Below, piece by piece: positions 18,574 through 60,975 of a stretch of DNA of 64,000 nucleotides. The stretch is from the IMG/VR virus record IMGVR_UViG_3300042319_002138, positions 162,304 through 226,303 of that record. The stretch is one strand, 5' to 3'. Both the position numbers and the translations under genes were made by a program. Below the pieces are notes generated by a model, which was not told the origin of the DNA, did no database searches, and worked only from the letters and a program-made list of their open reading frames with translations. Position 1 is the first letter of the stretch. Each line of letters begins with the position of its first letter.

Positions 18574-20016
18574 ATGTCAAGATTAACTGAAGCATTACAA
18601 ACTGAAAACACAACCACTAAGAACGGGATGGAAACTAATTCATCTTCTCTTAATGAGTGTGTTAACCTTTTCTTCTCCATTGGAGCAATGAGAGGTAAAA
18701 GTTCTGAGAGTGTTGTAAAACTTTTCTCAAAGGCTTTCAGTGAAGAACCAACTACAGCATTAAGAATCCTTTTTTGGGCAAGAGATGTTAGAGGTGGTGC
18801 TGGTGAGAGAAAAATCTTTAGAGATATTTTATCTTACCTAGTTGATAACTACTCAAAAGTAGTTAAAGTTAATCTTAACTTAATTCCTGAATACGGGAGA
18901 TGGGATGACGTTCATATCCTTTTCGGAACTGAATTGGAAAATGACGCCATCACACTTCTTGTAGAAGGTTTAAAAAGTGGTAATGGTTTATGTGCTAAAT
19001 GGATGCCCCGTAAAGGTTTGGTATTTAATAAAGTACGTAAAGCACTTAAGTTGGACCCAAAATCCCTTAGAAAATTACTTGTGTCTTTGTCAAACACGGT
19101 AGAACAAAAAATGTGTTCGAAAAGTTGGGCAGAGATTGAGTATTCAAAGACACCATCTTTGGCTATGTCAAGGTATACAAAAGCTTTTGGCAGAAACGAC
19201 CAAGAAAGATTTGGTCAATTTATTGAAGCCCTTCAAAAAGGTGAAACTAAAGTTAACGCCGGAGCTTTGTATCCTTACGATGTTACCAAGAATCTTAGAT
19301 TCGGTAATAAAGATTTGGCTAATGAACAATGGAAAGCCCTACCAAATTATATGGAAGGTTCAACAGAACTTGTCCTACCTTTGGTTGACGTTTCAGGTTC
19401 AATGGATTGTTCGGTAGGAGGTAATCCAAACCTTACATGTATGGAGGTGGCTATTTCTTTGGGTATGTACATCTCTGAAAGAAATGAGGGAGCATTTAAA
19501 GATATGTTTATGACATTTTCTTCAAATCCCGAAATTCAAAAATTGATGGGTCCACTTAGTGACCGTTACAATCAATTAGCTAGAGCTAAATGGGGTATGT
19601 CAACTAATTTAGAAGCAGCGTTCAAGACTATCTTGAATCAAGCAGTTAAATTTGGTGTTCCACAGGAAGAGATGCCAACAAAGATTCTTATCCTATCCGA
19701 TATGGAGTTTGATTCCGCTACTAGTAGTGGTTGGGGAAATGAATCTGATTGGAATCCCTCGGCTATGTCGATGATTGATGAAATGTACACTAACGCTGGT
19801 TATGTAAAACCTGGAATTATTTTCTGGAACCTACATTCCAACGGGGGTAATTTCCCAGCAAGATTTGATGAGGTTGGAACTGCTTTAATTAGTGGTTTCA
19901 GTCCATCAATCTTGAAATCGGTTCTGAATAATCCTAACAGTTTAACACCTGTTAATATTATGAATGAAACCGTACATTCAGAAAGATATGAACCTGTAAA
20001 GGTTTGGATTCTTTAA
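18574..20016 (+). CDS. DUF2828-type Ro60/TROVE-like protein with vWA domain
   Basis: 'FWARDVRGGAGER', 'PEYGRWDD', 'AKWMPR', MIDAS 'DVSGSM', 'ILSDMEFD', 'IIFWNL'. Confidence 0.8.
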   Translation: MSRLTEALQTENTTTKNGMETNSSSLNECVNLFFSIGAMRGKSSESVVKLFSKAFSEEPTTALRILFWARDVRGGAGERKIFRDILSYLVDNYSKVVKVNLNLIPEYGRWDDVHILFGTELENDAITLLVEGLKSGNGLCAKWMPRKGLVFNKVRKALKLDPKSLRKLLVSLSNTVEQKMCSKSWAEIEYSKTPSLAMSRYTKAFGRNDQERFGQFIEALQKGETKVNAGALYPYDVTKNLRFGNKDLANEQWKALPNYMEGSTELVLPLVDVSGSMDCSVGGNPNLTCMEVAISLGMYISERNEGAFKDMFMTFSSNPEIQKLMGPLSDRYNQLARAKWGMSTNLEAAFKTILNQAVKFGVPQEEMPTKILILSDMEFDSATSSGWGNESDWNPSAMSMIDEMYTNAGYVKPGIIFWNLHSNGGNFPARFDEVGTALISGFSPSILKSVLNNPNSLTPVNIMNETVHSERYEPVKVWIL

Positions 20017-20020
20017 AATA

Positions 20021-20178
20021 TTGTGGTATTGAGGAATAATTGCAGCAAAATTAAAATCTTAAATTTATAGCTACATAAGAGAGGGCTTTGATAACCCGTC
20101 TAACCACAAGGGTGTAAAGGTGAAAGCCGGGGACCACTCAGAGTTAGACAAAAGAGTCAAACGATTCTGTTACCACAA
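20021..20178 (+). ncRNA. Candidate structured RNA A downstream of the Ro-like gene
   Basis: Terminal stem TTGTGGTA/TTACCACAA and inner GAAT..GCAGCAA ... ATTCTG. Confidence 0.6.
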
Positions 20179-20189
20179 AATTATTAAAA

Positions 20190-20512
20190 AGGTGTAATGG
20201 GTACGTCAAACGAGACTATAAGACCCAATAAACGAATGGTTTCTGCAAATTCTTCTAGAAACTTGTAAGAACGACGAGGGGTTTTACCGATTTACCCCAA
20301 ATTAAATTATAAATTGGCGACCATAGGAGAGTTTAAACGTGGGAAAATCTCACACTTGAGGTCGTAAAACATACCTCTTGATTATCACAAGTAAAAATGG
20401 TAGTTGGATTTGTCTCAATCAAATAAAAGACACCCGAACCAAAATGGGTTAATAATATTGGGGTGGTTACTCAGCCACCGAAAATAACAAAAGGACCACC
20501 ATTCCGACACCT
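20190..20512 (+). ncRNA. Candidate structured RNA B downstream of the Ro-like gene
   Basis: Terminal stem AGGTGT/ACACCT and inner GAATGGT..CTGCAA ... ACCATTCCG; followed by terminator at 20521-20545. Confidence 0.6.
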
Positions 20513-20600
20513 AATTTTTTAAAGGGAGCTTGTCTCCCTTTTTTTATTTTACTATACTTAATAATTAACGGTTTTATTATATTTATTTAATATTAAATTA

Positions 20601-20825
20601 TTGGAAATGACTAGAATAGAAGAGATATTTTTTGAGGCTTTTGAATTGGGTATTCAAAATAAAATGTACGACACAGTATCTAAAATGGTTGGTAGTGGCG
20701 ATTATAAATACGTGGAACTCCGCCAAATTTATGAAATTGCTTTTGAAAAAGAAAAAAAGGTTTTAATTAATAATAATTTATATGAACAAACAAACAGTTC
20801 AGAAGTTTATCAACCGAGAGCTTAA
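20601..20825 (+). CDS. Hypothetical protein
   Basis: ORF. Confidence 0.5.
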   Translation: MEMTRIEEIFFEAFELGIQNKMYDTVSKMVGSGDYKYVELRQIYEIAFEKEKKVLINNNLYEQTNSSEVYQPRA

Positions 20826-21513
20826 GGCTAAAGATATTTTCTATTTAAAAGAAGTTACCAAAAAAGAGGCTTACGATTTTGTTAAAACTTATCACTACTT
20901 GGGTGAAGCTAAATTTTTTGCTAAATTTTCTTATGCTGTAATTGATAGGGAGACTGAAGATATCATTGGTGTTGCTACTTTCTCTAATCCACAAGGTAAT
21001 GTAGCTTTAAAGGGTTGGTTTGGTTTATCCAATGATAACCAAACGGTTTTAGAACTTAGTAGACTTTGTGTTTTACCTGAATTAAATGGTACAAACCTAA
21101 CTTCATACCTATTAGGTGGTAGTATTAGATTACTAAAAAAAGAAGGTGTTAAGGCAGTTATAACATTAGCGGATGATAGTAGACATAGCGGTAGTATATA
21201 TCAGGTCTGTAACTTCACCTATTACGGCTTAACAGATAAGAAATCAGATTTTTTTAGATGGGATGGTAAGGTTAACCCTAGAGGTTCAACAAAAGAAGTC
21301 CAAGGTGTTTGGATTCCTAGAACAAGGAAACATAGATATGCTTATATTATTGATAAATCTTTAAAGTGCTTATATATTGAAGAAATGAGACCACAAAAAG
21401 GTGATACAAATGAATATGATTGTTGTGCCGGTAAAAAACAAATTTACGACAATAGATTTAAAAAATGGTATTCTTGCCCCAAATGTGATGAAATAACTGA
21501 ATTAGCTTTTTAA
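20782..21513 (+). CDS. Mom-like (GNAT-fold) DNA modification protein
   Basis: 'VKTYHYL', 'LELSRLCV', 'ADDSRHSGSIYQVCNFTYYG', 'KHRYAY'. Confidence 0.7.
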   Translation: MNKQTVQKFINRELKAKDIFYLKEVTKKEAYDFVKTYHYLGEAKFFAKFSYAVIDRETEDIIGVATFSNPQGNVALKGWFGLSNDNQTVLELSRLCVLPELNGTNLTSYLLGGSIRLLKKEGVKAVITLADDSRHSGSIYQVCNFTYYGLTDKKSDFFRWDGKVNPRGSTKEVQGVWIPRTRKHRYAYIIDKSLKCLYIEEMRPQKGDTNEYDCCAGKKQIYDNRFKKWYSCPKCDEITELAF

Positions 21514-21514
21514 A

Positions 21515-22309
21515 ATGAAATATTTTTTTGAAATTAAAGAGATAGATAAAACTCTTGCTATAGAATTTGTACAAGAAAGACACTATTCAAAAGTAATGCC
21601 TAAATTAACCAAACATTGGTTAGGTTGTTTTTTAAACAATGAGTTAGTTGGTGTTGTTACATTGGGGTGGGGGACACAACCCTTACAAACAATTAAAAAG
21701 TTATTCCCGAACTTAAAATCAGAGGATTATTACGAAATTGGTAAGATGTGTATGGATGATTCTATGCCTAGAAATTCAGAGTCACAGATGTTAGCTCAAG
21801 TAGTTAGATGGATGAAAACTAATTTACCTGAAAAGAAATTTCTTTATACATGGGCAGATGGAATTGTGGGTAAAGTTGGGTATGTGTACCAAGGGTCTAA
21901 TTTTTATTATGGTAATTTTATTTGGACCGATATCTACATATCACCTTTAGGGGAGAAAATACACCCAAGAAGTTCAAAAGCTTTATTGAAAGAAAATGCT
22001 GAATTTTCGGGTAAAGAAAAATTATTTTGGATGACCCCTGATTTTATAAAAATAAAAGGTATTCGTAGAATTAGAGGAAAACAATTTAGATATATATACC
22101 CCCTGAATAAAAAATCAAAAGAACTTTTAAGAAGAGAATCTACGGTAGTATGGAACAAAATATACCCAAAAGAAGTTGACCTGTTATGGAAAGAACAAAA
22201 AGGTAAAGGTGATTATGTTTTATTAACGAGTAAACCTGAAATGAATTTAAGTGTTGTTGAATATAATCAAAACAATGTTAATGCACATAAAAAGTTAAAG
22301 AAATCTTAG
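21515..22309 (+). CDS. Second Mom-like (GNAT-fold) DNA modification protein
   Basis: 'VQERHYS', 'YEIGKMC', 'WADGIVGKVGYVYQGSNFYYG', 'KQFRYIY'. Confidence 0.7.
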   Translation: MKYFFEIKEIDKTLAIEFVQERHYSKVMPKLTKHWLGCFLNNELVGVVTLGWGTQPLQTIKKLFPNLKSEDYYEIGKMCMDDSMPRNSESQMLAQVVRWMKTNLPEKKFLYTWADGIVGKVGYVYQGSNFYYGNFIWTDIYISPLGEKIHPRSSKALLKENAEFSGKEKLFWMTPDFIKIKGIRRIRGKQFRYIYPLNKKSKELLRRESTVVWNKIYPKEVDLLWKEQKGKGDYVLLTSKPEMNLSVVEYNQNNVNAHKKLKKS

Positions 22310-23229: not shown

Positions 23230-23466
23230 ATGGAACCAAAAAAACTTTTAAAAATACATAGTTTTTTATATGGTATAAATGAAATCTTAGGATATAAGGG
23301 TAATACTATTATAGAGACTGATTATATCTACGCACCATATTTACCTATGTTTATAGAAGAAGATTTTAGACCTAGGCAAGGGATTGCTTCAAGGTATGCA
23401 CGAAAAATCGTGAATAACAATTTTTATGGGAGAGTTACACTTGGAGCCGATACGCAAAATACCTAA
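23230..23466 (+). CDS. Short protein matching the C-terminal segment of a T4 gp23-like major capsid protein
   Basis: 'YIYAPYLPM...FRPRQGIASRYA...FYGRV'. Confidence 0.7.
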   Translation: MEPKKLLKIHSFLYGINEILGYKGNTIIETDYIYAPYLPMFIEEDFRPRQGIASRYARKIVNNNFYGRVTLGADTQNT

Positions 23467-23851
23467 ATTTAATTTTGACAATTCAATAAATTTTAATTTT
23501 AATTCTTACACTGTTAATGCGGGTGCAAGAACAATACGTGCAACATGGTCACCCGAATTAGCACAAGATTTACAAGCATACCACGGGATAGACGCTGAGG
23601 CTGAATTAACGAGGTTATTATCTGAGGAATGGGCTAGAAGTATTGATAGAGAAATTATTAATACTCTTCTTGCTCAAGATTTAATAACCGTACAACCATT
23701 AGGCCGACCAATCGGTCATCTTTTTTATTTCGATTCCCAATACGAAACATTCGAACCTAAAGTTTATGACGATGGTTCTTGGAGTCTAAAAAATATTTTT
23801 GAAAGTTCCATTGGTTTTAAAATAGAAATATCCCCACATAAGTTTATTTAA
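23426..23851 (+). CDS. Short protein matching middle then N-terminal segments of a gp23-like capsid protein
   Basis: 'VNAGARTIRATWSPELAQDLQAYHGIDAEAELTRLLSEE...IDREII' followed by 'LITVQPLGRPIGHLFYFD'. Confidence 0.75.
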   Translation: MGELHLEPIRKIPKFNFDNSINFNFNSYTVNAGARTIRATWSPELAQDLQAYHGIDAEAELTRLLSEEWARSIDREIINTLLAQDLITVQPLGRPIGHLFYFDSQYETFEPKVYDDGSWSLKNIFESSIGFKIEISPHKFI

Positions 23852-23870: not shown

Positions 23871-24209
23871 TTGTTAAATGAATTTAACGTGCAAAATAAC
23901 CTTTTCAATAGATTTTTATTGTTATTGGGATTTTTTAAATTTAAAAAAACTGAATCAAAAGATGAGGCTTTTAATAGATTAAAAAAATTAGTTCTTTCTG
24001 TTAAAAATAGGGAGGATTTAATTAATGCTGTTAAACTAATAAACCACTTTAATAAAACTTATGAAATAAATCCTGAATCAGCGGAATTTATTTATTTTAA
24101 CAAAATAGTTAATTTAATGAGATTGATTATTCGTAAAAAACATAAGAAAAGTGGTGACAAAAATGACGAGGGTCAGTGGAAATGCGAAATAGAATTAGAA
24201 AGATATTAA
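23871..24209 (+). CDS. Hypothetical protein
   Basis: ORF; start uncertain. Confidence 0.5.
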   Translation: MLNEFNVQNNLFNRFLLLLGFFKFKKTESKDEAFNRLKKLVLSVKNREDLINAVKLINHFNKTYEINPESAEFIYFNKIVNLMRLIIRKKHKKSGDKNDEGQWKCEIELERY

Positions 24210-25552
24210 AAGAAAATTCTGATGAGTTAGGTAATTGGTTTAATGAAATCGAACCGACCTTTAAAAATTGGAATTTTGAGTTTGATGGTAAACACGAATA
24301 TTGGGTCGATTTAACTAAAATGACTAAAGATGAAATTAGTGTTGTTGCTGATTACATTTTAAAATGTTTACCAAACATTAGTGGGTTACGAAAAACTAAG
24401 TTTAAAAATTTAGGAGATTATGATGGTGTTGTCATTCATTGCGGTAGTGAAGATAATGATTATTATCCCACAGAAAATTATGTATGTTTTATGGAGTTTT
24501 CTTTTGATGATGACGAAGAAAAAAATAATAGTATTTATATTGACGGTAGAGAAGTGTATGAGTACATCAAAATCAAAGAAGAACAAAATTTAAAAGAAAG
24601 TTTAAATTGGTCTGATAAAGACACAATTAATTGGGATAAAGACCCTAATTGGGGTACTGATAACTATTATGGCCCTGACACTAACAATTGGACAACCGAT
24701 ACAGCAAAAAGCCAATGGGTACAAGGTGATGGAGGTGGTGTCTCAAAATCATCAGAAGATACAATGTCAGAAGAAGATGAAATAGAATTTGGTGACGATT
24801 TTGATTGGGCTAAAAATACTGGGGTACAACCAAATTATAATGGACATCCACAAGGTGTGGTTTATCTTCGTGACCATGATGAAATTGATGAATTTTGTGA
24901 TATTATAGAAACTTATAATGGTGGTGAATTACCTAGAGGTAATGTAAGAGAAAATTTACATAGTGGTTTAGAAAATAGTAGGGATGAATTAGAGGGTAGT
25001 GACTATAACCCTTCTAATGCTGTAATATCAGTCTCATTTTTTGTAGAAAAAAACAAACCCAGTTTATTGTCCGTTGGTTATTGGGGTTATGATGTAGCTG
25101 ACAGGTCAATTTTTGAATGGTTAGAAGATGGTGACACATTTAACAATGAATATGAATTATATACCAATTTAAATCAAGTTAAAAAGGTTTTTGAAGATTA
25201 TCAAAATCCTGAATTAGTGAAAGAATCTACTGACCCAGAATGGGAGTGGCTAAATGATGTACCTGTTACAATCCCATTTGAAATGGTTGAATTACATAAA
25301 AAATATAAAATAGAAGTAAAAGAAGATTTACGAGACGCTATTGAGTCATGTGGTGATAATTCAAGAATATTTGTACAAGGGTATTACGGTGTTGTCACCA
25401 AAACTGATACAATATCTTATAATCGAATACATTGTGATTCAGAAATAGAAGATGAAGTTTTTACTTTACAATTATATTTTTATGATATAGATGATAATAA
25501 AATTAGTTACTTTTGGGTATCCTCTAATATGGTAGATTTTTACGAAATATAA
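24182..25552 (+). CDS. Acidic multi-module protein with MRNRIRKILKE tag and internal LKES/VKES repeats
   Basis: Internal 'NLKESLNW' and 'LVKESTDPEWEWL'. Confidence 0.65.
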   Translation: MRNRIRKILKENSDELGNWFNEIEPTFKNWNFEFDGKHEYWVDLTKMTKDEISVVADYILKCLPNISGLRKTKFKNLGDYDGVVIHCGSEDNDYYPTENYVCFMEFSFDDDEEKNNSIYIDGREVYEYIKIKEEQNLKESLNWSDKDTINWDKDPNWGTDNYYGPDTNNWTTDTAKSQWVQGDGGGVSKSSEDTMSEEDEIEFGDDFDWAKNTGVQPNYNGHPQGVVYLRDHDEIDEFCDIIETYNGGELPRGNVRENLHSGLENSRDELEGSDYNPSNAVISVSFFVEKNKPSLLSVGYWGYDVADRSIFEWLEDGDTFNNEYELYTNLNQVKKVFEDYQNPELVKESTDPEWEWLNDVPVTIPFEMVELHKKYKIEVKEDLRDAIESCGDNSRIFVQGYYGVVTKTDTISYNRIHCDSEIEDEVFTLQLYFYDIDDNKISYFWVSSNMVDFYEI

Positions 25553-25980
25553 TGAGAAATTTAATTAAAAAAATATTAAAAGAATCTACTGACCCAGATT
25601 GGGCATGGCTAGATGAGATACCACCAATTATAGATGGTTGGGATTTATATCATAACAAATTAAAAGGTGAATCTTTTACAATAAATCTTAAATCTGAAGT
25701 TATGACTGATGATTGTGTTGATGAATACTTCCCAGATGATGTTGATTATGAATCTGAAGTAAAAGTAATATTAGTAGAAGTGGTACCAAAAATGAGGGTA
25801 AAAACAAATGGTTGTTATACTAAAGAGGTAGAAGTATTATTATTAAAATTTTATGAAAGTACTAATGGACATGATGGGATTAGTGACAATTTTAGTGGTG
25901 AAAAAAATGGGGAGATTGCTAATATGTGTGATAATAGATGTTGGTGGGTTTACCCTGGGTTAATAAACGTAAATTATTAA
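25552..25980 (+). CDS. Acidic protein with MRNLIKKILKESTDPDW tag
   Basis: N-terminus repeats the internal 'KESTDPEWEWL' of the upstream gene. Confidence 0.65.
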   Translation: MRNLIKKILKESTDPDWAWLDEIPPIIDGWDLYHNKLKGESFTINLKSEVMTDDCVDEYFPDDVDYESEVKVILVEVVPKMRVKTNGCYTKEVEVLLLKFYESTNGHDGISDNFSGEKNGEIANMCDNRCWWVYPGLINVNY

Positions 25981-26154
25981 AGATTTCTTAACATTAGATA
26001 TTTGTCCTTTTTACTTTTATGACCTATATATTGTTATATGAAAATAATATTATTAACACTAATAATAACAACAATCACATTTTTATTACTGACAGTCTCA
26101 AAAGACAGAAAAGAGTATTTTGATTATTACGGAAAAAAGTAATATCTTTGTCTT

Positions 26155-26604: not shown

Positions 26605-26678
26605 CGATGTGTATATCAGTTGGTTAGATAGACACTCTGATAAGGTGTAGGTCGGAGGTTCGAGCCCTCCCACATCGA
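26605..26678 (+). tRNA. tRNA-Ile(GAU)
   Basis: Cloverleaf; anticodon loop CTGATAA. Confidence 0.93.
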
Positions 26679-26718
26679 CAAAAAAGAAAAAGTTCTTTGA
26701 TGTATTGGTATTAGTAAT

Positions 26719-26791
26719 GACTCAGTAGCTCAATTGGTAGAGCTCCACACTGTTAATGTGGCCGTTACAGGTTCAAGTCCTGTCTGAGTCG
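26719..26791 (+). tRNA. tRNA-Asn(GUU)
   Basis: Cloverleaf; loop CTGTTAA. Confidence 0.93.
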
Positions 26792-26794
26792 CTG

Positions 26795-26915
26795 AGGTTG
26801 ATTGGGGAATGATATAACGTTAACGTGTCAGTAGTCGTGGTTATATCGGAGTTGTAACTGTCCGAGTAAAGCCAATCGTAAAAGGGGATGTCCACACAAC
26901 CATCTTCCCCTTTCC
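26795..26915 (+). ncRNA. Candidate structured RNA between tRNA-Asn and tRNA-Tyr
   Basis: GATTGG/CCAATC, GATATAAC/GTTATATC and GGGGATG/CATCTTCC stems. Confidence 0.5.
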
Positions 26916-26921
26916 TAACTT

Positions 26922-27002
26922 GGGAACTGAAAGTCGTTTGGATACGGCAGCGAAACTGTAAATTTCGTCCTCGCGGGAGTGGTTCGAGTCCACCAGGTCC
27001 CA
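26922..27002 (+). tRNA. tRNA-Tyr(GUA), atypical D arm
   Basis: Loop CTGTAAA, T arm GGTTCGAGTCC, acceptor GGGAACT/AGGTCCC. Confidence 0.75.
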
Positions 27003-27070
27003 CAAAAAAAAATAAATGTAATATAAGTGGATTTTAACTCTGTTTGTTATATTTATAATAAAAGAATATT

Positions 27071-27520
27071 ATGAAACAGAGAGAAGTTAAAATTACTGAT
27101 GAAGAAATAAAGTTGGCATATGACAAATACGACACACTACATCAGGCATCCGCAGAATTAAAAATGACTACTGTGTCATTATGGAGAAGGGCAAAAAAAA
27201 TTGGTTTAGCCTGGAAAGATAAAAACTTTAAACCTGAACAACAAAAAATACCTTTAAACGAGATTATAGAAGGTAAACATCCGTACTACCAAACCTTAAA
27301 ATTAAAAAAAAGGTTATTGAAAGAAGGGGTTAAAGAAAATAAGTGTGATATTTGCGGTATAATAGATTGGAATAATATAGAGTTATCAATGCAATTAGAC
27401 CATATTGATGGTGACTCACACAACCACAAATTGGATAATTTAAGGATGGTTTGCCCTAACTGCCATTCACAAACAAACACTTATTGTGGTAAAAATAAAA
27501 AAATCAAAGCGGAAATTTGA
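27071..27520 (+). CDS. HNH homing endonuclease inside tRNA cluster 1
   Basis: 'KCDICG...QLDHIDGDSHNHKLDNLRMVCPNCH'. Confidence 0.9.
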   Translation: MKQREVKITDEEIKLAYDKYDTLHQASAELKMTTVSLWRRAKKIGLAWKDKNFKPEQQKIPLNEIIEGKHPYYQTLKLKKRLLKEGVKENKCDICGIIDWNNIELSMQLDHIDGDSHNHKLDNLRMVCPNCHSQTNTYCGKNKKIKAEI

Positions 27521-27550
27521 AAACAACATGTCTTCCTGTATATTTTATAC

Positions 27551-27622
27551 GCGTCTTTGGTGTAATTGGTAGCACGGCTGGTTCCAACCCAGTCGGTCAG
27601 GGTTCGAGGCCTTGGGGATGTG
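27551..27622 (+). tRNA. tRNA-Trp(CCA)
   Basis: Loop TTCCAAC; G-U-rich acceptor. Confidence 0.8.
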
Positions 27623-27627
27623 CAAAT

Positions 27628-27703
27628 GGTGATGTAGCTCAGTTGGTAGAGCAAAGGACTGAAAATCCTTGTGTCGAAGGTTCAATTCCTTCCATCACCA
27701 CCA
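27628..27703 (+). tRNA. tRNA-Phe(GAA)
   Basis: Loop CTGAAAA; encoded CCA. Confidence 0.95.
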
Positions 27704-27707
27704 TTAT

Positions 27708-27782
27708 AGGGTAATGGACTAATTGGCAAGTCACCACGTTTGGGACGTGGGCATCGTGAGAGTTCGAGTCTCTCTTACCCTA
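27708..27782 (+). tRNA. tRNA-Pro(UGG)
   Basis: Loop TTTGGGA. Confidence 0.9.
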
Positions 27783-27790
27783 CTATACAA

Positions 27791-27863
27791 TGTCCTATGG
27801 TGTAATTGGCAACACGTCGGTTTTTGGTACCGAAGAGTCGAGGTTCGAACCCTTGTGGGACAA
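27791..27863 (+). tRNA. tRNA-Gln(UUG)
   Basis: Loop TTTTGGT. Confidence 0.9.
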
Positions 27864-27869
27864 CAATAT

Positions 27870-27943
27870 GGTGTTTGAAGCATTAAGGTGATGTACTAGT
27901 TTGTGGGACTAGGAAAGACGGGTCGGTACCGTCCTTACACCCA
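27870..27943 (+). tRNA. tRNA-His(GUG), non-canonical T loop
   Basis: Loop TTGTGGG; G-1 extended acceptor; T loop GTCGGTA. Confidence 0.75.
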
Positions 27944-27947
27944 AAAA

Positions 27948-28037
27948 GGAAAGGTGGGTGAGTGGCTAAAACCAACAATCTGCTAAGTTGTCGTACCTGT
28001 AAGGGTACCGAGGGTTCGAATCCCTCCCTTTCCTCCA
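27948..28037 (+). tRNA. tRNA-Ser(GCU)
   Basis: Loop CTGCTAA, long variable arm, CCA. Confidence 0.93.
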
Positions 28038-28040
28038 TAT

Positions 28041-28112
28041 GTGGATGTGATGTAACGGTTAACATGAGACTCTTATACAGTCTTCTCGGTGGTTCAACTC
28101 CACCCATCCATA
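28041..28112 (+). tRNA. tRNA-Ile(UAU)
   Basis: Anticodon arm AGACT-CTTATAC-AGTCT. Confidence 0.8.
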
Positions 28113-28117
28113 CTATT

Positions 28118-28191
28118 ACACTCTTAGCTCAATGGATTAGAGCACAACGTTACGGACGTTGGGGTTGGTGGTTCGAGTCCATCAGAGTGTA
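28118..28191 (+). tRNA. tRNA-Arg(ACG)
   Basis: Loop TTACGGA. Confidence 0.9.
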
Positions 28192-28200
28192 CAATAATAA

Positions 28201-28271
28201 GGCACCATGCCCGAGTGGTTAGGGGTCGGTCTGCAAAACCGCTTACATTGGTTCGAACCCAATTGGTGCCT
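28201..28271 (+). tRNA. tRNA-Cys(GCA)
   Basis: Loop CTGCAAA. Confidence 0.92.
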
Positions 28272-28354
28272 CTATCTTTAATTTCTTTTATATTCAATAT
28301 AGGCCCAAACACCAACAAATATTGGGGTTAGTATAGCAATAACTATTTCTGTAT

Positions 28355-30562
28355 TCATCGCATAATTGTTAAATGTCCTGTTATCATTTTACGTGAGTCA
28401 TCATACTCAGACCCATACATTATTCTCCAAACATAAATCCCATCAAAACACATTTTATTATTATAAGTACCATCCCAACCAACGGTATGATTGTATGATT
28501 CAAAAATTGTTTCACCCCATCTATTGAATACCAATAAATTATAATCATAGACATCAAACCCATCAGTAAATATTGGTAACCAAATATTGTTGAAAGCATC
28601 ACCATCGGGGGTAAATGTATTAGGTATATAAATTAATTCTTGTGGACATTCTTGTATTGCTATATTAGCTTGTTCTTCATTAGAAACACAACCATTAACC
28701 GTTTGGGAAACGCTAATTGTATAAAAACCAACATTATTCCAAACATAAGGTAAACTATTATCTTGTATTGTATCACCTTCAACAACCCAATCAAACAACC
28801 CAGATAAAGATGAATAAGCTGTATAGATTCTAAAAATACTATCACCTTCACAAAGTTGGTTAAATTCATATGAAGGTGTTACAGATGTTATGATTGGTTG
28901 TGGGTTTACAATAACGTTGATTGTTGTATCAAATGGGCAATTACTTTGTGTATATGTATAAGTTACATCATTGTTTGTTATGATACCTTGTTGTGGGCAA
29001 AATTCATCAGTCTGAACCCCATTGACTAAGAAAGTACCATTTAAAGGTGAACCCACTAAATCTACACAACCATCATAATCACAAAAAGGACCAATAGGGT
29101 CTATTGTAGGGTTTATGTTTAAAATAAATGTAGTGAAGTAAGAGGTATCACTATTACAACCAATAGGACTAGTAGAATAAACACTTATAGAGTCTTGATA
29201 TAAACCACTAGGTTCTAATGACCAATCCGTTGTTATATTATCAGTACCTTGACCATTTATTATTTGTGGTGTTGTAGACCATATGTAGTTGTAACCAACA
29301 CCCATAGAAGGTACACTATAACTTTCTGATGTTGATAAATAACATACCGTATCAGGACCACTAATAGGTGTCATTATTATTTGTGCTGGGTTAGTGAGTG
29401 TTGCATTACCTGTTACGGTACAACCTATACCGTCTGTAATTAAAAAACTATAATTACCATAACAAAGGTTAGTGGGGTTAAAAGTTGTTTGTAGAGTATT
29501 CCAAGAAATAGTAGTGACACCATTGGTTCCGTTAGGGATTACATTAATACTACCATCACAATAGTTATAACAAGTTGGGTCAATAAAAGTAATTGTAGGT
29601 TGTGGTAAGTTAGGTGGACCAGGTTGTACAAACACCGTATCAGGTCCTGGACCGGCAATACTATTACAAGTATTCCATCCAACATTACAAGAAGGATATA
29701 CTAGTTGACAAGTATAATTAGCTCCTTGTACAGGTGGTGTAACCGTAATGGACGCACCAACCCCAATTGGATTTGGGTTACCTACAATATACCATGTTGG
29801 TACAGGTAAAACAGTTGGTCCACTTGGAGTGTATCGGTACGCATCATTATTTGCTGTCCATTGTGTGGAATTCCTACCTGGTACAGTTATCGCCACGGTT
29901 CCTGTGGTATTATGTAATCCTTGAACCGCGGTACCTCCCGCCCAAGCTAGACAGTTTGGTTTTGATTGAATATAATTTTCTATTACGTTTGTTGATTCAT
30001 AAATCACTGTATGAAATGTCCCCAGTAAATTTGTACATGAAAACATAGGGACACCAACCCAACTAACAACTAATTTTCTACAAGGTGCTGTACCTTGAAC
30101 TTGGTACCTAATTTGCCCACCTAAACCTGGGTGCCAATCTTGCCAAGGACCCATGACACAATTTTTTGGTACTGTACCCGCACCATTAGGTATTGTTGCT
30201 GAAGTAAATGTTGTTGGTTGTGCCGGTGAAAAAGAAATCCAACCGTTAGAACCAACCCAAAATTGATTGTATGTTTGTCCAAAGAAACAAAATGTAAACC
30301 CAATATTAAAAGGACCTTGTTGTGAATCATCCGACATAAATAATTGTGTACCAGTATTTGTTTGTGTTACATAAGGAATATTTGTAACACCGTAGTTTGT
30401 TGTTTGATTTGGATTTGAACCTGGTCCACATTGACTAAAATCGGCAGTTAATGTTGTTGACCCAACACCACAAGGTAGTATTTGGTCTGGTCCTAAATAA
30501 GGACAGTATTGTGAATAGGTCACAAAAGAAATTAGTATAAAAAGGTATTTAATTAAGTTCAT
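28355..30562 (-). CDS. Secreted adhesin-like protein with T9SS type B (gliding motility-associated, CHU_C) C-terminal domain
   Basis: Signal peptide ending YSQ; C-terminal 'YIPNTFTPDGDAFN...VFNRWGE...GWDGTYN...GIYVW'. Confidence 0.88.
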   Translation of the reverse strand: MNLIKYLFILISFVTYSQYCPYLGPDQILPCGVGSTTLTADFSQCGPGSNPNQTTNYGVTNIPYVTQTNTGTQLFMSDDSQQGPFNIGFTFCFFGQTYNQFWVGSNGWISFSPAQPTTFTSATIPNGAGTVPKNCVMGPWQDWHPGLGGQIRYQVQGTAPCRKLVVSWVGVPMFSCTNLLGTFHTVIYESTNVIENYIQSKPNCLAWAGGTAVQGLHNTTGTVAITVPGRNSTQWTANNDAYRYTPSGPTVLPVPTWYIVGNPNPIGVGASITVTPPVQGANYTCQLVYPSCNVGWNTCNSIAGPGPDTVFVQPGPPNLPQPTITFIDPTCYNYCDGSINVIPNGTNGVTTISWNTLQTTFNPTNLCYGNYSFLITDGIGCTVTGNATLTNPAQIIMTPISGPDTVCYLSTSESYSVPSMGVGYNYIWSTTPQIINGQGTDNITTDWSLEPSGLYQDSISVYSTSPIGCNSDTSYFTTFILNINPTIDPIGPFCDYDGCVDLVGSPLNGTFLVNGVQTDEFCPQQGIITNNDVTYTYTQSNCPFDTTINVIVNPQPIITSVTPSYEFNQLCEGDSIFRIYTAYSSLSGLFDWVVEGDTIQDNSLPYVWNNVGFYTISVSQTVNGCVSNEEQANIAIQECPQELIYIPNTFTPDGDAFNNIWLPIFTDGFDVYDYNLLVFNRWGETIFESYNHTVGWDGTYNNKMCFDGIYVWRIMYGSEYDDSRKMITGHLTIMR

Positions 30563-30705
30563 TTTTTTTTTATTTATAAATATAATATTAAGACGTATTT
30601 AAATGTAAATAGAAGGAACACTTATCCCAAAAGGTGGGATTGGAGAATATCTAGTACTTTTGGCTTATTTTTTAAATTTACGATTAAATAGAATATTTAT
30701 ATTAT

Positions 30706-31455
30706 ATGAAGTTAATTAGAGAATTCGATGATTTTAGTTGGACTAATATGGGTACACTTAATCCGTTTATGAGTGATGACCCACTTGTTGTTGTATGGTT
30801 AGATAAATCTGCCACTGAATCAGAGATTAATAAATTATATGATATGCTTTTGGAAGTTAATATAGAAATTAGTACATCAAAGTCAGATTTTGTAAAAAGT
30901 TTATTAACATATTCTAGAAATGGGTCTGCATATGTTAAATCTTACATAGCTCAAAATGGTGAAAAAAGAGCTGGGTATGGTGATACAAAAGCTTTATTTG
31001 ATGAACATAAATATTGGAAAGCTATGGAAGATTTAGACGGTAAACCATATATAGAATATAAATTAGGTGATATCTTTAAAGATAGATTAAATGAGTCTGA
31101 AGAGTTAAATTGGATTATAGAAAGTAACCCATCATTTAGAAACAAGATAATTATTTTTGAACCACTGATTATTGAGGATGAGTATAATATTGTTATAGAT
31201 GGTTTATTAGAATTTGATGAGGACCTTTATACCTATAGTGGTAATTTAGAAGAATTAAGACCTTTCACTTCTTATGATTATTTACACCATTTAGTTATAG
31301 GTTTAAATGGTGTAGTAGCTTATGGTGGGGCCAATGAACATAACAACGAAGACTGGGGTGGTTTTATGGATAACGTAGAAAATTACATAGGTAATTATTA
31401 TAAAAATTTTAACAACCCAGAAGTTATTGATGGAAGAAAATATTTTAATCTTTAA
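30706..31455 (+). CDS. Acidic two-module protein (MKLIREFDDFSW; internal RLNESEELNWI)
   Basis: ATATTTATA upstream; shared motif family. Confidence 0.6.
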   Translation: MKLIREFDDFSWTNMGTLNPFMSDDPLVVVWLDKSATESEINKLYDMLLEVNIEISTSKSDFVKSLLTYSRNGSAYVKSYIAQNGEKRAGYGDTKALFDEHKYWKAMEDLDGKPYIEYKLGDIFKDRLNESEELNWIIESNPSFRNKIIIFEPLIIEDEYNIVIDGLLEFDEDLYTYSGNLEELRPFTSYDYLHHLVIGLNGVVAYGGANEHNNEDWGGFMDNVENYIGNYYKNFNNPEVIDGRKYFNL

Positions 31456-33405: not shown

Positions 33406-34016
33406 TAAAACTAAAAAATTTATTAACCATATTTTTCATAAGTATGGTAAGTATAGTGTATTCACAACCAACCTACCCTATCCAGACACAATTAAAAGGT
33501 GATTCTGTGGTTATTCTTACAAAAAAACAATCTGATGATATTAATTCACTAATTGAGAATCAAAAAATTAGAATACAAAAATATAAAACAGAAATAAAAT
33601 TAGTTAATGATACTAACACGTTATTAAATAACGATATTAAAATAAAAGATAGTGTTATTAACCAATTGGATAGTTTGTTAACCGTCCAAAACAATTATTA
33701 CGATAGTTTAATTTCTAAAATAGATACGTTAGAGAATTGGATTTTATCGTCGTCGATAGATAATGGGTACCTATATTATTCTTGGCAAGACTCAACAGTT
33801 AAAGTTATTGATTTAAGTTTGTATATGTTAGTATCGCATAGAGGAAGTGGTAATTATAGTTTAATTACAAGAGGTGATGTTACTAATATATATTATTGGA
33901 AACAAATAAATCTACTTAAAGAAGAAAGTCCTGAGATTGGTTGGGAATTAAATATATCCCCAAAATATAAACCAAGAATAGTATTATTCCCATATAAATT
34001 AACCCCAAAATTATGA
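33402..34016 (+). CDS. Secreted coiled-coil protein in two-component locus
   Basis: Signal peptide ending YSQ. Confidence 0.6.
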   Translation: MIKLKNLLTIFFISMVSIVYSQPTYPIQTQLKGDSVVILTKKQSDDINSLIENQKIRIQKYKTEIKLVNDTNTLLNNDIKIKDSVINQLDSLLTVQNNYYDSLISKIDTLENWILSSSIDNGYLYYSWQDSTVKVIDLSLYMLVSHRGSGNYSLITRGDVTNIYYWKQINLLKEESPEIGWELNISPKYKPRIVLFPYKLTPKL

Positions 34017-36889: not shown

Positions 36890-36896
36890 CATAAAT

Positions 36897-36968: not shown

Positions 36969-37009
36969 CAACTAACCATAAATCCTAGTAACCCCTAGGT
37001 TGGTTAAAC

Positions 37010-37082: not shown

Positions 37083-37091
37083 CAATAAATT

Positions 37092-47991: not shown

Positions 47992-48456
47992 TTGATGAAA
48001 CGATTGATTAAGAAAATTTTAAAAGAGTCTTTTTTGGATGATTTTGGTATGTCATCCAATTATAAATATGATCCTTTAAATTGGGAACAAGATGCTCAAG
48101 ATGTGGGTGGTGCTAAAAAATTAGCAGATGAAATTTATGGTGGTGACTATAATAATTTCTTAGATAGAATTCCACAATTAGAAGAGGAACAACTTAAAAC
48201 TGATACTATAAAGGTAATGACTGTTAACGGTAAAAGCGTTGAGAGGGATTATAGATATGTAATGTATAAAGATGGTGAAAGAGATATTATGGCTTACGAC
48301 CATGACACTAACCAAATGTTTGTAGATGATTCTATTTGGACGTTTTTGAGACAGGGATTTGATCTGAATTCTTCAGAAATATCAGATATATTCCGAGATT
48401 GGATAAAAGAAAATTATGGATTAGACGTTCCTTATATCCATTCACAAAAACTTTAA
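47992..48456 (+). CDS. Hypothetical protein with MKRLIKKILKES tag
   Basis: GATATTTAT upstream. Confidence 0.65.
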   Translation: MMKRLIKKILKESFLDDFGMSSNYKYDPLNWEQDAQDVGGAKKLADEIYGGDYNNFLDRIPQLEEEQLKTDTIKVMTVNGKSVERDYRYVMYKDGERDIMAYDHDTNQMFVDDSIWTFLRQGFDLNSSEISDIFRDWIKENYGLDVPYIHSQKL

Positions 48457-53308: not shown

Positions 53309-53337
53309 AAAAAAGGGACCTTCGGGTCCCCTTTTTT
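53309..53337. terminator. Bidirectional terminator
   Basis: AAAAGGGACC-ttcg-GGTCCCCTTTT. Confidence 0.85.
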
Positions 53338-55231
53338 ATATTCTACTATAAAGGTCTTCTAAAAAATATTCTTTCATATCTGAATTGGTGGCGTAATCAC
53401 TGTAATGTGGGCTTAAATCTTCATTTTCTTCGTCCAAGACATCAGCATAGAAATCATTAAAATAAGACCAATGACCAAATGGTTCATCTATACATTCTTC
53501 ACAAAAACTTTCAAAAGCTTCTATTTCATCTGCATGTTCTGTAGTGTCATAATGTCTTTCAGGGTCATAATATTTTTTACAACTGTCCCAACATCCAGAT
53601 ATTTTGTTTTTTATTACATCTAAAATTAAATCTGTAGATTCAAAAACAAGATTATTATTTTCCCATATAGGTTGACCTAATAAATCTTTAATACTATCTA
53701 CAGCTGTAGTGTAAATACCACTAGATACAGCATTGTTATATGAACTTGCATAAGCCCAACCTAATTCCATTTTTAAATCATCAAACATTTCGTCTTCATT
53801 TATCAGGTCACCCATTAAATCATCATCTAATAACATGTCTTCCCTAAATGGTTCACCGTTTTCCAATTCTCCGTCTATAAAACCACCTTTCCTAATATAT
53901 TTTTTTATATACTCTAAAGCTTTTTGGTCATCTGTAACCAAATCCCACACATTACTTTTCCATTCACGACCAATAAGGTCACTGGCTGAGTAAGGTTCCC
54001 AATAATCTTCATCACAAAAAACAGCTTTGGCTAGATACCTATTCATATAACTGTAACCACCATCATTATCTTCAAATAATCGTATAAGGTCACACCAATC
54101 ACCAGCAATAAAATATAATTTACCACTTCGATATTCTATATCTATAAATTGACCAGCAATATAAGGACCAACTATTTCTATAGGGAATGTTTGGTATCTA
54201 TTATAAATTTGTGCCGGAGTTAAATCAGTTTTTACTTCAATTTCTTTAGCCCAACCCCAATCATCTTCTTCAGATTCATTTAATTTATTTCCTTGGCTGA
54301 CAACTATTAAATCCTCCCAACTGTAACTATTTGTACGACCAATCCATTTAACTTGTATGGGTAAACTATCACCAAAAGTCGTGTAAACGTCATTAATGAT
54401 ACCCACTTCTTCTATTGGATTATCTTCATCGTCGGCATTATAAAATCTTGAATTTTCAGATATTCTAACGTTAAAACCAAGAACATCTGTCAATTCATAA
54501 CCTAAATCTTTAAAATCTTTAAGTGGTGTTTCAATATCACCCCTCATCCAATCAATGTCATCTAATTCTTTAGATTCATTCATTGTTTTTGGTTCTAATG
54601 GTGGACTTAATAAGAACTTTTGATTAATCCAATTTCTCAATTCATTCTCAACAAAATATTCTGGAACTGGTTCTGAATCTGGTTTTGATGCTGCTAATTC
54701 AGATATATATCTAGCAAATTTAATTTTGAATTTTCTATCCATCATATGTAACAAACCATCTGAGATAAAAAATATTTTTGATATGGGGTCTTCGTGAGGG
54801 ATATCACCCTCAACAGCATCCATAACATGAATTAAAGTTCTACCCCACCATTTTTTATAACCTCTAGTATCTTCTAATCCTGGTTTTATTATTTTATTGA
54901 AAGCCCTAATAGAACTACCAACAAAACCGGCCACAGCTATTTGTGGAAAAAACCACGGTATCAATCTTATTAAGGCTTTATAAACCCCCTCACCGATATC
55001 GTATGTTAAATTTTTATTTTGAGCAGTTTCAACTAAAGTTCTTAATTGACCAAAAGTGATTGGGCCCTGTTTTTTACAAAACTGTTCTTTTTCACAAACA
55101 TCTGAAATAACTTTTTGAGATGGAGCAACAACACCCTTAGATGGTTCAGTATGTTTTGGTAAATCTATTAGGTTTGAGTTGTCTAACTCTTCCTCAGTTT
55201 CCTTTAATATTTTTCTAATGATTTCTTTCAT
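53336..55231 (-). CDS. Acidic multi-module protein with MKEIIRKILKE tag and internal NES repeats
   Basis: 'MNESKELDDIDW' and 'KLNESEEDDWGW'. Confidence 0.65.
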   Translation of the reverse strand: MKEIIRKILKETEEELDNSNLIDLPKHTEPSKGVVAPSQKVISDVCEKEQFCKKQGPITFGQLRTLVETAQNKNLTYDIGEGVYKALIRLIPWFFPQIAVAGFVGSSIRAFNKIIKPGLEDTRGYKKWWGRTLIHVMDAVEGDIPHEDPISKIFFISDGLLHMMDRKFKIKFARYISELAASKPDSEPVPEYFVENELRNWINQKFLLSPPLEPKTMNESKELDDIDWMRGDIETPLKDFKDLGYELTDVLGFNVRISENSRFYNADDEDNPIEEVGIINDVYTTFGDSLPIQVKWIGRTNSYSWEDLIVVSQGNKLNESEEDDWGWAKEIEVKTDLTPAQIYNRYQTFPIEIVGPYIAGQFIDIEYRSGKLYFIAGDWCDLIRLFEDNDGGYSYMNRYLAKAVFCDEDYWEPYSASDLIGREWKSNVWDLVTDDQKALEYIKKYIRKGGFIDGELENGEPFREDMLLDDDLMGDLINEDEMFDDLKMELGWAYASSYNNAVSSGIYTTAVDSIKDLLGQPIWENNNLVFESTDLILDVIKNKISGCWDSCKKYYDPERHYDTTEHADEIEAFESFCEECIDEPFGHWSYFNDFYADVLDEENEDLSPHYSDYATNSDMKEYFLEDLYSRI

Positions 55232-60011: not shown

Positions 60012-60548
60012 ATGAAAAATATAATTAAAAAAATATTAAAGGAATCTGATTTAGATTGGATTAAAGATATTTCTGATGAAGTACCTTCTTGGAGTAATAG
60101 AGTTAAATTACCTATCGAAGATTTAGTGTTTGATTACATGTTAGAAAATACTAATTTATTCAACGAATTATACAGAGAAGGGTATTATTCACCAACGGAA
60201 GAGTATAAATTAAGATTTACACCTGAAGAATGGGATGACTATGGGTTTGACCAATGGGAAAGTGGTGATTGGAAAGAAAATGGTGAATGGGATAATACAC
60301 CTAACCTTACTGATTGGAGTATAATGGAACCACTTTTAAAGGATTGTTCTAAATGGGAACATATGTCACAAGAAAATGTAGATTGGGATTTAGATGCCCA
60401 ATCTTTTACAGATAGACTTATTTGGCAAAGAAAAAGTGATGGTAGATATTTTGGTGCAACTATTTATGGTACATCTTACGATGGTTGGGAAGGTAATGAC
60501 GAATTTTTGAGGGAGATATTCCAAAAGAAAGTAACAATTTTTGTATAG
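60012..60548 (+). CDS. Acidic Trp-rich protein with MKNIIKKILKESDLDWI tag
   Basis: ATATTTATA upstream. Confidence 0.65.
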   Translation: MKNIIKKILKESDLDWIKDISDEVPSWSNRVKLPIEDLVFDYMLENTNLFNELYREGYYSPTEEYKLRFTPEEWDDYGFDQWESGDWKENGEWDNTPNLTDWSIMEPLLKDCSKWEHMSQENVDWDLDAQSFTDRLIWQRKSDGRYFGATIYGTSYDGWEGNDEFLREIFQKKVTIFV

Positions 60549-60552: not shown

Positions 60553-60975
60553 ATGGATAAATTTTTAAGAAAAATAATCAAAGAAGAACTTGACGATTCA
60601 ATGGATTGGATTAAACAACATGCTTTCCATTTGGATTTAATGTCACAAAATAAAAGAAAGATAGAATCATTATCAGAAGTTAAAAAAATATTATTTAATC
60701 CGGCTGTACAAACATTTAGTGAAAAGTTTAAGACTGTGGCATATTATTTAGAGGACATGAATTACATGCCTGAAAATCTTATCTTTGATGAATATCTTTC
60801 TTATATAGAAATAAAAAGACACCCACAAGGTAAAGGTCTTTTTATTAAAAAGGGTAGATATTTTGTTGGACCAACAGTAAGTGATGATGAACTTATTGAA
60901 ATGAGTAAAGAAGTAGGTTCTTTTTGGTTTGAGGAATTTGTTGGCAGTTTTTTACCAAATAGATTATATAGGTAA
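60553..60975 (+). CDS. Protein with MDKFLRKIIKEELDDSMDWI tag
   Basis: Shared N-terminal motif. Confidence 0.6.
   Translation: MDKFLRKIIKEELDDSMDWIKQHAFHLDLMSQNKRKIESLSEVKKILFNPAVQTFSEKFKTVAYYLEDMNYMPENLIFDEYLSYIEIKRHPQGKGLFIKKGRYFVGPTVSDDELIEMSKEVGSFWFEEFVGSFLPNRLYR

Follow-up and report, generated by a model that had tools for sequence, protein, structure and literature searches.

The window, the whole 64,000-nucleotide stretch of DNA analysed here, was the last 64 kb of a 226-kb contig of a T4-like jumbo phage from lake-water metagenomes (IMG/VR record IMGVR_UViG_3300042319_002138, positions 162,304 to 226,303). It contained several genes in which one conserved peptide either opened the protein as an N-terminal tag or lay inside the protein at the border between modules. 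The consensus of this junction was [IL]-[NKR]-E-S-acidic-[FL]-D-W-[IV]-[KR]-D and it occurred 14 times in the genome. At gene starts it formed a tag of 11 or 9 residues, such as MKNLIKKILKE/S, where the slash here and below marks the presumed cut. The features of the window are given below in window coordinates; P, L and G numbers are our labels for proteins of relatives, for the relatives compared and for genomes, respectively.

23871..24209 (+), an upstream 112-aa ORF (module Z), overlapping the 24182 start by 28 nt in another frame and fused to the tag in some relatives.
24182..24214 (+), N-terminal tag MRNRIRKILKE of the 456-aa modular gene (24182-25552), 11 residues, basic, a predicted helix (residues 2-21 of the model, low pLDDT), with the presumed cut after E11.
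24215..24598 (+), module A, predicted as a confident alpha/beta domain at residues 28-137 of the model; it occurred without B or C in P0035 and P0036 and with other partners in P0021-P0029.
24590..24610 (+), junction LKE/SLNW between module A and a W/D/N-rich linker module; in P0017 the same linker opened a gene as MYLKKIIRE/SLNWSDKDTINW.
24767..24817 (+), decayed junction EEDEIE/FGDDFDWAKN in front of module B (profile i-E 4e-6); relatives had GEDVNE/SDEDWSW here, and in P0014, P0016, P0034 and P0037 module B opened a gene as MKNLIKKILKE/SDFDWIK.
24788..25225 (+), module B, predicted as a confident alpha/beta domain at residues 220-342 of the model; the proteins made of A and B only (P0009-P0013, P0015) ended here.
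25212..25263 (+), first copy of a 52-nt direct repeat, 83% identical to the second copy and containing the 20-nt exact run AAAGAATCTACTGACCCAGA.
25217..25252 (+), junction VKE/STDPEWEWL between modules B and C (i-E 2.7e-9); P0009 stopped at YQNPEL, one residue before this stretch.
25226..25549 (+), module C, absent from the syntenic gene of L007-L009 and replaced by D in P0007.
25552..25980 (+), gene D, the tag MRNLIKKILKE/STDPDWAWL plus a cargo module; its ATG overlaps the stop of the previous gene (TAATG).
25571..25622 (+), second copy of the 52-nt direct repeat.
30706..31455 (+), a two-module gene with the short N-terminal tag MKLIRE/FDDFSW and an internal junction RLNE/SEELNWI at 31087-31119.
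47995..48456 (+), a gene with the N-terminal tag MKRLIKKILKE/SFLDDF, which lacks the W.
53336..55231 (-), a 631-aa gene with the N-terminal tag MKEIIRKILKE/T, module M1 (residues 1-219), junction J1 (54545-54583), module M2 (residues 220-319), junction J2 (54236-54283) and module M3, predicted as a confident domain at residues 335-631.
60012..60548 (+), a gene with the N-terminal tag MKNIIKKILKE/SDLDWIKD.
60553..60975 (+), a gene with the N-terminal tag MDKFLRKIIKE/ELDDSMDWIK.

An earlier note, made from the sequence alone, had claimed that a (K/N)ES-acidic-W junction recurs inside the genes at 24182, 30706 and 53336 and that the copy inside the first of them matches the start of the next gene. 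This observation held in full. NLKE/SLNW was found at 24590, LVKE/STDPEWEWL at 25217 inside the 24182-25552 gene, MRNLIKKILKE/STDPDWAWL at the start of the next gene at 25552, RLNE/SEELNWI at 31087, and TMNE/SKELDDIDW and KLNE/SEEDDWGW at 54583 and 54283, both on the minus strand in the 53336-55231 gene. The start of the first gene was most likely the ATG at 24182, as the note had it, since this start gives the common 11-residue tag. The note had missed the decayed fourth junction in the 24182 gene, the N-terminal tags of the genes at 30706, 47995, 53336 and 60553, and further copies elsewhere in the genome at contig positions 10357(-), 30342, 30691 and 85447.

The recurrence of the motif was more than chance. 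A strict pattern occurred 16 times in the 270 ORFs of the genome, while residue shuffles gave 2.9 +/- 1.7 with a maximum of 10 in 500 shuffles. A junction profile found 14 places in this genome and none in the two nearest cultured phages. In addition, the 21-nt core of the tag occurred 8 times in the window with at most 3 mismatches, against 0.23 expected. A total of 447 cluster representatives carried the junction, with up to 13 junctions in one protein. In 499 junctions outside the training set of the profile, E was conserved at 100%, W at 99% and S at 81%, and P3 was aliphatic in 98%. The tags reached the Glu in 11 residues (51 cases) or 9 residues (42 cases).

A map of the modules was drawn from BLAST end points and alignments of 37 relatives. 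Modules occurred alone, in other orders and in other combinations, and the breakpoints fell on the junction. The same syntenic locus held A-B, X-A-B-C or A-B-C plus D, and in P0007 module D was fused in frame after B. Similarly, the middle module M2 of the 631-aa gene was missing junction to junction in L023 and in 12 further relatives and opened a gene with a full tag in P0221, while M3 stood alone in P0230. For the 30706 gene, a scan of viral contigs found only identical copies, which offered no comparison on the separability of its modules, and a scan with P0044 found nothing. In total, 665 modules from 179 proteins fell into 167 BLAST families, 95 of them singletons, with a median junction spacing of 114 aa (interquartile range 98-137).

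The DNA of the junction was also consistent with a role as a point of exchange. The two copies of the 52-nt repeat, which share rare codons, flank module C, and recombination between them would remove module C, the stop codon and the next start codon and would give A-B-D in frame, the architecture seen in P0007. No contig with the predicted 359-nt deletion of module C was found in the four runs tried, although this says little because contigs drop rare variants. In four lake metagenomes, many different contigs shared only positions 25551-25587, the DNA of the 11 tag codons, and diverged before the ATG and after codon E11 or S12.

The note had named single continuous predicted domains across the junctions, together with no cleavage being seen, as the outcome that would refute its reading, and such domains were not what we found. 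AlphaFold gave separate confident domains for A, B and M3, and the junctions were low-confidence stretches between them. The motif was predicted to lie outside three of the five modules, the other two being not confidently folded. Fold searches of both models found no convincing match: Foldseek against PDB and BFVD gave none at E <= 1e-3, and the best Z scores of a wide VIA search were 3.8 and 4.8. An ESM Atlas look-alike search for module M1 scored 0.80, which was uninformative. Pfam and PHROGs gave nothing useful for the modular proteins, including no matches to internal proteins and no toxin or immunity family for the window proteins, and tblastn of the two genes and of the tag against GenBank phages gave no real hit.

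The link of the tags to the phage head was circumstantial. The genome encodes a T4-type S77 prohead protease (contig 23887-24654; Peptidase_S77 match at contig position 24055-24507, E 2.7e-28), as do the three other tag-rich genomes tested (G006-G008). The tag-bearing genomes were G000 and G005-G008, and G001-G004 were tag-free. T4-family proteases cut after Glu at hydrophobic-x-Glu sites (PMC5694885), a rule that the junction fits, and T4 sequences that we examined showed the same format: MKTYQEFIAE/A in IPII and IPIII, MAKINELLRE/STTT in gp24 and FLTE/A in gp23. The capsid protein of 80 relatives kept L[IL][NTS]E/[SAT] ahead of the conserved mature core. However, this is a candidate cleavage site by position and conservation only, since the alignment with T4 gp23 placed the LTE/A site of T4 in a gap. 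The scaffold kept EI..[LV]VKE/S followed by an acidic run, and the core protein kept [IL]L.E/S. The [IL]-[NK]-E/S at the module borders matched these conserved candidate sites, although the specificity of the protease itself is only inferred from sequence. A 174-aa gene between the protease and the scaffold started with MNIRKIIKEE. Multi-junction tag genes followed the capsid gene in all four tag-bearing genomes whose capsid-gene neighbourhood was read (G000, L033, G006 and G008), whereas in G007 no tag gene followed it.

All 7 tag transcription units carried ATATTTAT 4-9 nt upstream, and the same element preceded the portal, protease, sheath and tube genes. However, it also preceded non-structural genes and is not shown to be a late promoter. 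The T4 late promoter TATAAATA was not enriched, with 90 copies seen against about 93 expected.

Taken together, the genes at 24182, 25552, 30706, 53336, 60012 and 60553 belong to one cassette system, and this much we consider shown by the analysis. Each cassette is a short conserved peptide followed by a small cargo domain; the domains are unrelated, mostly acidic and about 110 aa long. The peptide is an 11- or 9-residue basic predicted helix ending in [IL]-[KR]-E when it opens a gene and is [IL]-[NK]-E when it lies inside a gene, and in both cases S-acidic-[FL]-D-W-[IV]-[KR]-D follows. Cassettes stand alone or are strung together in one reading frame, relatives gain, lose, swap and split them exactly at the peptide, and the DNA coding the tag is similar enough between genes to serve as a recombination site. 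The remainder of our explanation is inferred, including packaging and cleavage. In this view, the N-terminal tag works like the capsid targeting sequence of T4 internal proteins and the S77 prohead protease cuts after the Glu of every junction. A string of cassettes would thus be loaded into the prohead as one polyprotein and released as separate small proteins, which would stay in the head and enter the host with the DNA. A role of the cargo in host takeover or counter-defence is a guess from its hypervariability.

The interpretation in the note, namely that the modules are fused cargo units which the head protease could release and that the junction could serve for shuffling, was therefore supported only in part: separable units and exchange at the junction were borne out by the comparison with relatives, while release by the protease was not shown. 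We hold the full explanation with no more than moderate confidence, as several observations speak against it. The modules were strongly acidic (median pI 4.5, with 86% below 5.5), unlike the basic internal proteins of T4. The acidic run and the W after the presumed cut were conserved as strongly as the Glu, although T4-type sites are not known to need them, so the motif may serve another or a further purpose. The decayed junction EIE/FGDDFDW showed that not every border is kept cleavable. Moreover, relatives with about 60% capsid-protein identity had the same protease and the same predicted capsid site but no tags, and the protease alone therefore does not explain the tags.

Two alternatives appeared unlikely but survived about equally well. 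First, the internal copies could be fusion scars, left by recombination or by stop-codon loss between neighbouring tagged genes, with the tag working only at N-termini and the multi-module proteins acting uncut as ordinary multidomain proteins with floppy linkers. Fresh-looking fusions indeed kept the whole tag inside the protein (VYESRKKLIKKILKEGDFDW in P0021, P0022, P0026 and P0029), the TAATG overlap means that a small change would fuse the two window genes, and the junction in front of module B has decayed. However, the 499 junctions came from diverged families and kept their key residues, and internal copies had their own preference for N at P2 (52-55%), whereas the listed N-terminal tags carried K or R. 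Scars under no selection would not behave this way. Junctions also followed Gly/Ser-rich linkers with no trace of the N-terminal helix.

Second, the acidic-aromatic peptide S-D-D-[FL]-D-W-[IV]-K-D could be a short linear motif that docks each module on a common partner, such as the scaffold core, the capsid interior, a chaperone or a host protein. Strings of modules would then be multivalent, and cleavage would be absent or secondary. The conservation of the W and the acidic residues and the predicted position of the motif outside the folded domains favoured this reading, as did KESLGDW and KESLKEDW at the matching place in the scaffold of this genome and of G005. On the other hand, the invariant Glu with an aliphatic P3 and a small P1' is exactly the T4-family protease format and recurred in the head proteins without the W, the scaffolds of G006-G008 lacked the W although those genomes are rich in tags, and the partner remains hypothetical.

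A glycosylation sequon (N-E-S) and Asn-type self-cleavage were both rejected because the Asn was only 52-55% conserved while the Glu was invariant, and a signal in the mRNA or in translation initiation was rejected as the sole explanation because internal junctions lack start codons and follow Gly/Ser linkers. A tandem repeat of one structural domain, with the junction as its first strand, was very unlikely despite the regular spacing and the 63 of 177 proteins with two modules of one family, since the modules fell into 167 families, A, B, C, D, M1, M2 and M3 shared nothing beyond the junction, and the motif lay before the fold in all three confident models.

[quoted passage not shown] There too, a short N-terminal propeptide of about 10 residues ending in hydrophobic-x-Glu is shared by otherwise unrelated small proteins, the genome has a gp21-type (S77) prohead protease and the loci are hypervariable between relatives; the first 10 residues of IPIII suffice for capsid targeting (PMC9026906). 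However, MKTYQEFIAE and MKNLIKKILKE have no sequence similarity, and in our phage the motif goes on after the presumed cut (S-acidic-W-I-K-D), recurs inside genes so that up to 13 cargo units sit in one reading frame, and precedes acidic rather than basic cargo. In the giant phages phiKZ and SPN3US, a T4-related prohead protease cuts after Glu at short motifs, and several head proteins are cut at more than one site (PMC5694885). Their motifs are S/A/G-x-E and A-x-E, their substrates are not built of shuffled cassettes joined by one extended conserved junction, and no shared N-terminal tag family of this size is described there. Polyproteins of RNA viruses (for example, with picornavirus 3C sites) also hold several independently folding units in one reading frame, separated by a short conserved motif, which there fits the virus's own protease and here does so only by inference from candidate sites, but the host kingdom, protease fold and biology are all different, and the units found here are accessory and interchangeable rather than a fixed essential set, with their cleavage only inferred. 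Finally, the demarcation motifs of polymorphic toxin systems (VENN of CdiA, PxxxxDPxGL of Rhs) mark the border at which variable modules are exchanged, and in Rhs the motif is also a cleavage site. In our case no toxin or immunity signature was found in Pfam or PHROGs, many junctions occur per protein instead of one, and the context is a phage with a link to the head module.

In its boldest form, which we consider possible but somewhat less likely than not, a clade of freshwater T4-like jumbo phages would use true polyproteins. Strings of up to 13 small acidic cargo domains would be loaded into the prohead through an 11-residue targeting tag and cut by the prohead protease at every [IL]-[NK]-E/S junction into separate proteins that are ejected. 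The roughly 33-nt DNA of the tag would double as a portable recombination site, and any small gene that acquires the tag could therefore be plugged into the injected arsenal. This would be a cassette system for capsid cargo with more than 100 module families.

Polyprotein strategies are textbook for RNA viruses, while in full-text literature searches we found no description of one of this kind for tailed phages. If the junctions are cut, this clade shows how a phage can pack many different small proteins into its head from a few genes and how it can renew the set by recombination at a shared tag. The junction profile, which already finds 447 cluster representatives with more than 100 module families, would then be a ready sequence handle for finding candidate capsid-delivered effectors in metagenomes, and such proteins are the prime place to look for counter-defence functions. 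Even without cleavage, the system is a clear natural example of in-frame domain shuffling at a dedicated joint.

The 64-kb window formed the end of a single virus contig of 226,303 bp with 31% G+C, which was about 70% complete according to the CheckV estimate. The contig encoded a T4-type head module, namely a large terminase, a gp20-like portal, a helical core protein, an S77 (gp21-type) prohead protease, an acidic scaffold and a gp23-like capsid protein. The nearest cultured phages by capsid protein were Microcystis phage Mel-JY01 and Flavobacterium phage vB_FspM_immuto, at about 42-44% identity, and the DNA was found in many lake-water metagenomes. The window carried 24 tRNA genes in clusters and a tmRNA with the tag peptide ANATVGHFVTEGATVAA. 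As in T4, where ipI lies next to the tRNA cluster, tag genes were located next to a tRNA cluster here. Several further genes were identified on the contig, one of which hinted that the host was a member of Bacteroidota:
Window 26605-28272, 36800-37896, 43918-45715, 50298-50371 and 57996-58388: the tRNA clusters and the tmRNA.
Window 28355-30562, minus strand: a 735-aa protein with a PKD-like domain and a CHU_C type IX secretion signal domain, the basis of the Bacteroidota hint.
Window 31480-33405 and 34013-35416: two sensor-kinase-like genes that sit in a phage genome; one is GAF-PAS-PAS-HATPase and the other is a 467-aa protein with a HATPase_c domain.
Contig 101837-107014 and 6316-8799 (minus strand), outside the window: a 1,725-aa protein ending in a Hint/intein-like domain, and a separate gene encoding a ClpB-like double AAA+ protein.

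The earlier note had reported that a tag junction recurs inside several genes of the window, and this observation was confirmed, since every motif that it named was present where it had been placed. A strict pattern of the junction occurred 16 times in 270 ORFs, while residue shuffles gave 2.9 +/- 1.7 occurrences with a maximum of 10 in 500 shuffles. Moreover, a profile built from junctions of relatives found 14 places in this genome and none in the two nearest cultured phages. The note had missed a fourth, decayed junction in the first gene (EEDEIE/FGDDFDWAKN, where the slash marks the presumed cut) and several N-terminal tags at 30706, 47995, 53336 and 60553.

We next asked whether the modules between the junctions were separable. 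A word search with the 458-aa protein of the first gene gave 37 metagenomic relatives. BLAST end points and the alignment divided this protein into four parts: module A (to about residue 147), a W/D/N-rich linker, module B (208-347) and module C (350-458). Some relatives were A-B proteins that ended just before the B/C junction (the relative P0009 stopped at ...YQNPEL), and others were B-C proteins that began with MKNLIKKILKE/SDFDWIK. We also found A with other partners, as well as A and B separated by inserted modules. The relative P0017 began with the linker as MYLKKIIRE/SLNW. In another relative, P0007, the homologue of the next gene of the window (D, 25552-25980) was fused in frame after B through KLIKE/SEEDWGWIDDIKP.

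The locus was syntenic in relatives. The gene order was DUF2828/DUF7788, two Mom-like genes, a 300-aa gene, Gp23-fragment genes, a 106-aa gene, the variable gene and then a 69-71-aa gene. The variable gene was A-B in the relatives L007-L009 and X-A-B-C in the relative L010. In the window, the upstream features were the following:
Window 18574-22309: a DUF2828/DUF7788 protein followed by two Mom-family genes, a group conserved upstream of the modular locus in relatives.
Window 23230-23466 and 23426-23851: two small overlapping ORFs that match the Pfam Gp23 model at positions 304-366 and 132-195; they are permuted fragments of the major capsid protein and are conserved directly upstream of the modular gene in relatives.
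Window 23871-24209: a 112-aa ORF that overlaps the 24182 start by 28 nt in another frame, with the same arrangement in L007 and L010.
In P0008, P0018, P0019, P0021 and other relatives, the module homologous to the 112-aa ORF was fused in frame to the tag. Either the genes were separate or a frameshift joined them.

The 631-aa gene (53336-55231, minus strand) behaved the same way. The relative L023 and 12 further relatives lacked exactly the module of roughly 100 aa between its two junctions, P0221 began with that module behind a full tag, and P0230 was the last module alone. In P0250-P0254 the first module was located in the middle of proteins of about 1,000 aa with many junctions. This first module (M1, residues 1-219) was highly conserved (70-80% identity) in several hundred metagenomic proteins, some of which were about 690 aa long and had no junction at all, and one relative carried sigma-70 Pfam domains. 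AlphaFold gave only a low-confidence helical model for M1.

At the DNA level, a direct repeat of 52 nt was located at 25212-25263 and 25571-25622. The two copies were 83% identical, had a 20-nt exact run and shared rare GAC and CTA codons. Recombination between them would delete C, the stop codon and the next start codon, giving the A-B-D frame seen in P0007. The 21-nt core of the tag occurred 8 times in the window with at most 3 mismatches, against 0.23 expected. In four lake metagenomes, contig depth over 25539-25619 was 5-20 times that of the flanks. Many contigs shared only 25551-25587 and diverged before the ATG and after codon E11 or S12. A depth spike was also seen at 26101-26144, a stretch that was shared by several other contigs in the lake metagenomes and belonged to a tiny hydrophobic ORF of 34 aa (26040-26144, starting MKIILLTLIITTITFLLL...).

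The junction profile was then run against 1.84 billion cluster representatives. It found 447 proteins at E <= 1e-3 and 85 at E <= 1e-10, with up to 13 junctions in one protein of 1,489 aa. In 179 of these proteins there were 665 modules in 167 BLAST families, 95 of them singletons, and the median junction spacing was 114 aa. In 499 junctions outside the training set, P3 was I, L, M or V in 98%, P2 was N in 55%, K in 25% and R in 13%, P1 was E in 100% and P1' was S in 81%, followed by an acidic run, [FL], D, W (99%), [IV], [KR] and D. N-terminal tags were 11 or 9 residues long up to the Glu. The tags were confined to a subclade. Namely, the related genomes G006, G007 (380 kb, complete) and G008 had 15, 47 and 37 matches, while relatives with about 60% capsid identity had none, including complete genomes of 296 and 345 kb.

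AlphaFold2 models from the two alignments predicted confident separate domains: A (28-137), B (220-342) and M3 (335-631), the last module of the 631-aa gene. The tag, the linker and all junctions fell below pLDDT 50, and in each of the three cases the acidic-W motif was located before the fold. Single domains running across the junctions, the outcome that the earlier note had named as refuting its interpretation, were not observed. Fold searches matched no known fold.

The link to the head protease was inferred. T4-family prohead proteases cut after Glu at hydrophobic-x-Glu (PMC5694885), the first 10 residues of IPIII suffice for capsid targeting (PMC9026906), and T4 internal proteins are diverse apart from the capsid targeting sequence, or CTS (PMC3012670). 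The real T4 sequences read here showed MKTYQEFIAE/A, MAKINELLRE/STTT and FLTE/A. In the clade studied here, the capsid protein of 80 relatives kept L[IL][NTS]E/[SAT], followed by variable small residues and then the invariant SGSFETVVFPIVRRVF. The scaffold kept EI..[LV]VKE/S plus an acidic run near residue 45, and the core protein kept [IL]L.E/S near residue 16. A 174-aa gene between protease and scaffold started with MNIRKIIKEE in the genomes G000, L033, G006, G007 and G008, and multi-junction tag genes followed the capsid gene in all of these except G007. A second conserved N-terminal family, reading MKK[VI]IKL[NT]E.DL..[IL]VK[KR][IV]I.EE, was found at window 9220-9603 and at contig 24725-25003 and 34262-34690, and five paralogues were located between protease and scaffold in G008. 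In addition, the module size of about 110 aa matched the small size of the ejected internal proteins of T4, although this last point was our own inference.

All 7 tag transcription units carried ATATTTAT 4-9 nt before the start codon (Fisher p = 6e-6). The element, (G/A)ATATTTAT, was strand-specific: across the whole contig it occurred 70 times on the plus strand against 29 for its complement, and 50 of the 99 copies were located within 60 nt upstream of an ORF on the same strand (for example, window 30693-30700, 47982-47989 and 59997-60004). It also preceded the portal, core, protease, sheath and tube genes and can be considered a candidate promoter or initiation signal.

The earlier note had suggested that the modules were fused cargo units that the head protease could release and that the shared junction could serve as a recombination point, and this interpretation was partly supported. 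The cassette and recombination reading rested directly on the comparison of proteins and DNA and was well supported; we hold it with high confidence. In contrast, cleavage at the junctions and loading of the modules into the capsid were inferred from sequence alone, without protein-level data, and the polyprotein and capsid-cargo reading was plausible but unproven. Several points spoke against it. The modules were acidic (median pI 4.5), unlike the basic internal proteins of T4. The W and the acidic run after the presumed cut were as conserved as the Glu, and a T4-type site is not known to need them. Moreover, one junction had decayed, and tag-free relatives had the same protease. For the combined explanation we consider the chances to be about even. 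Processed head cargo bearing a CTS is already known, while full-text literature searches returned no description of the form found here. In this view, the modular proteins of this phage would be CTS-tagged, protease-processed head cargo.
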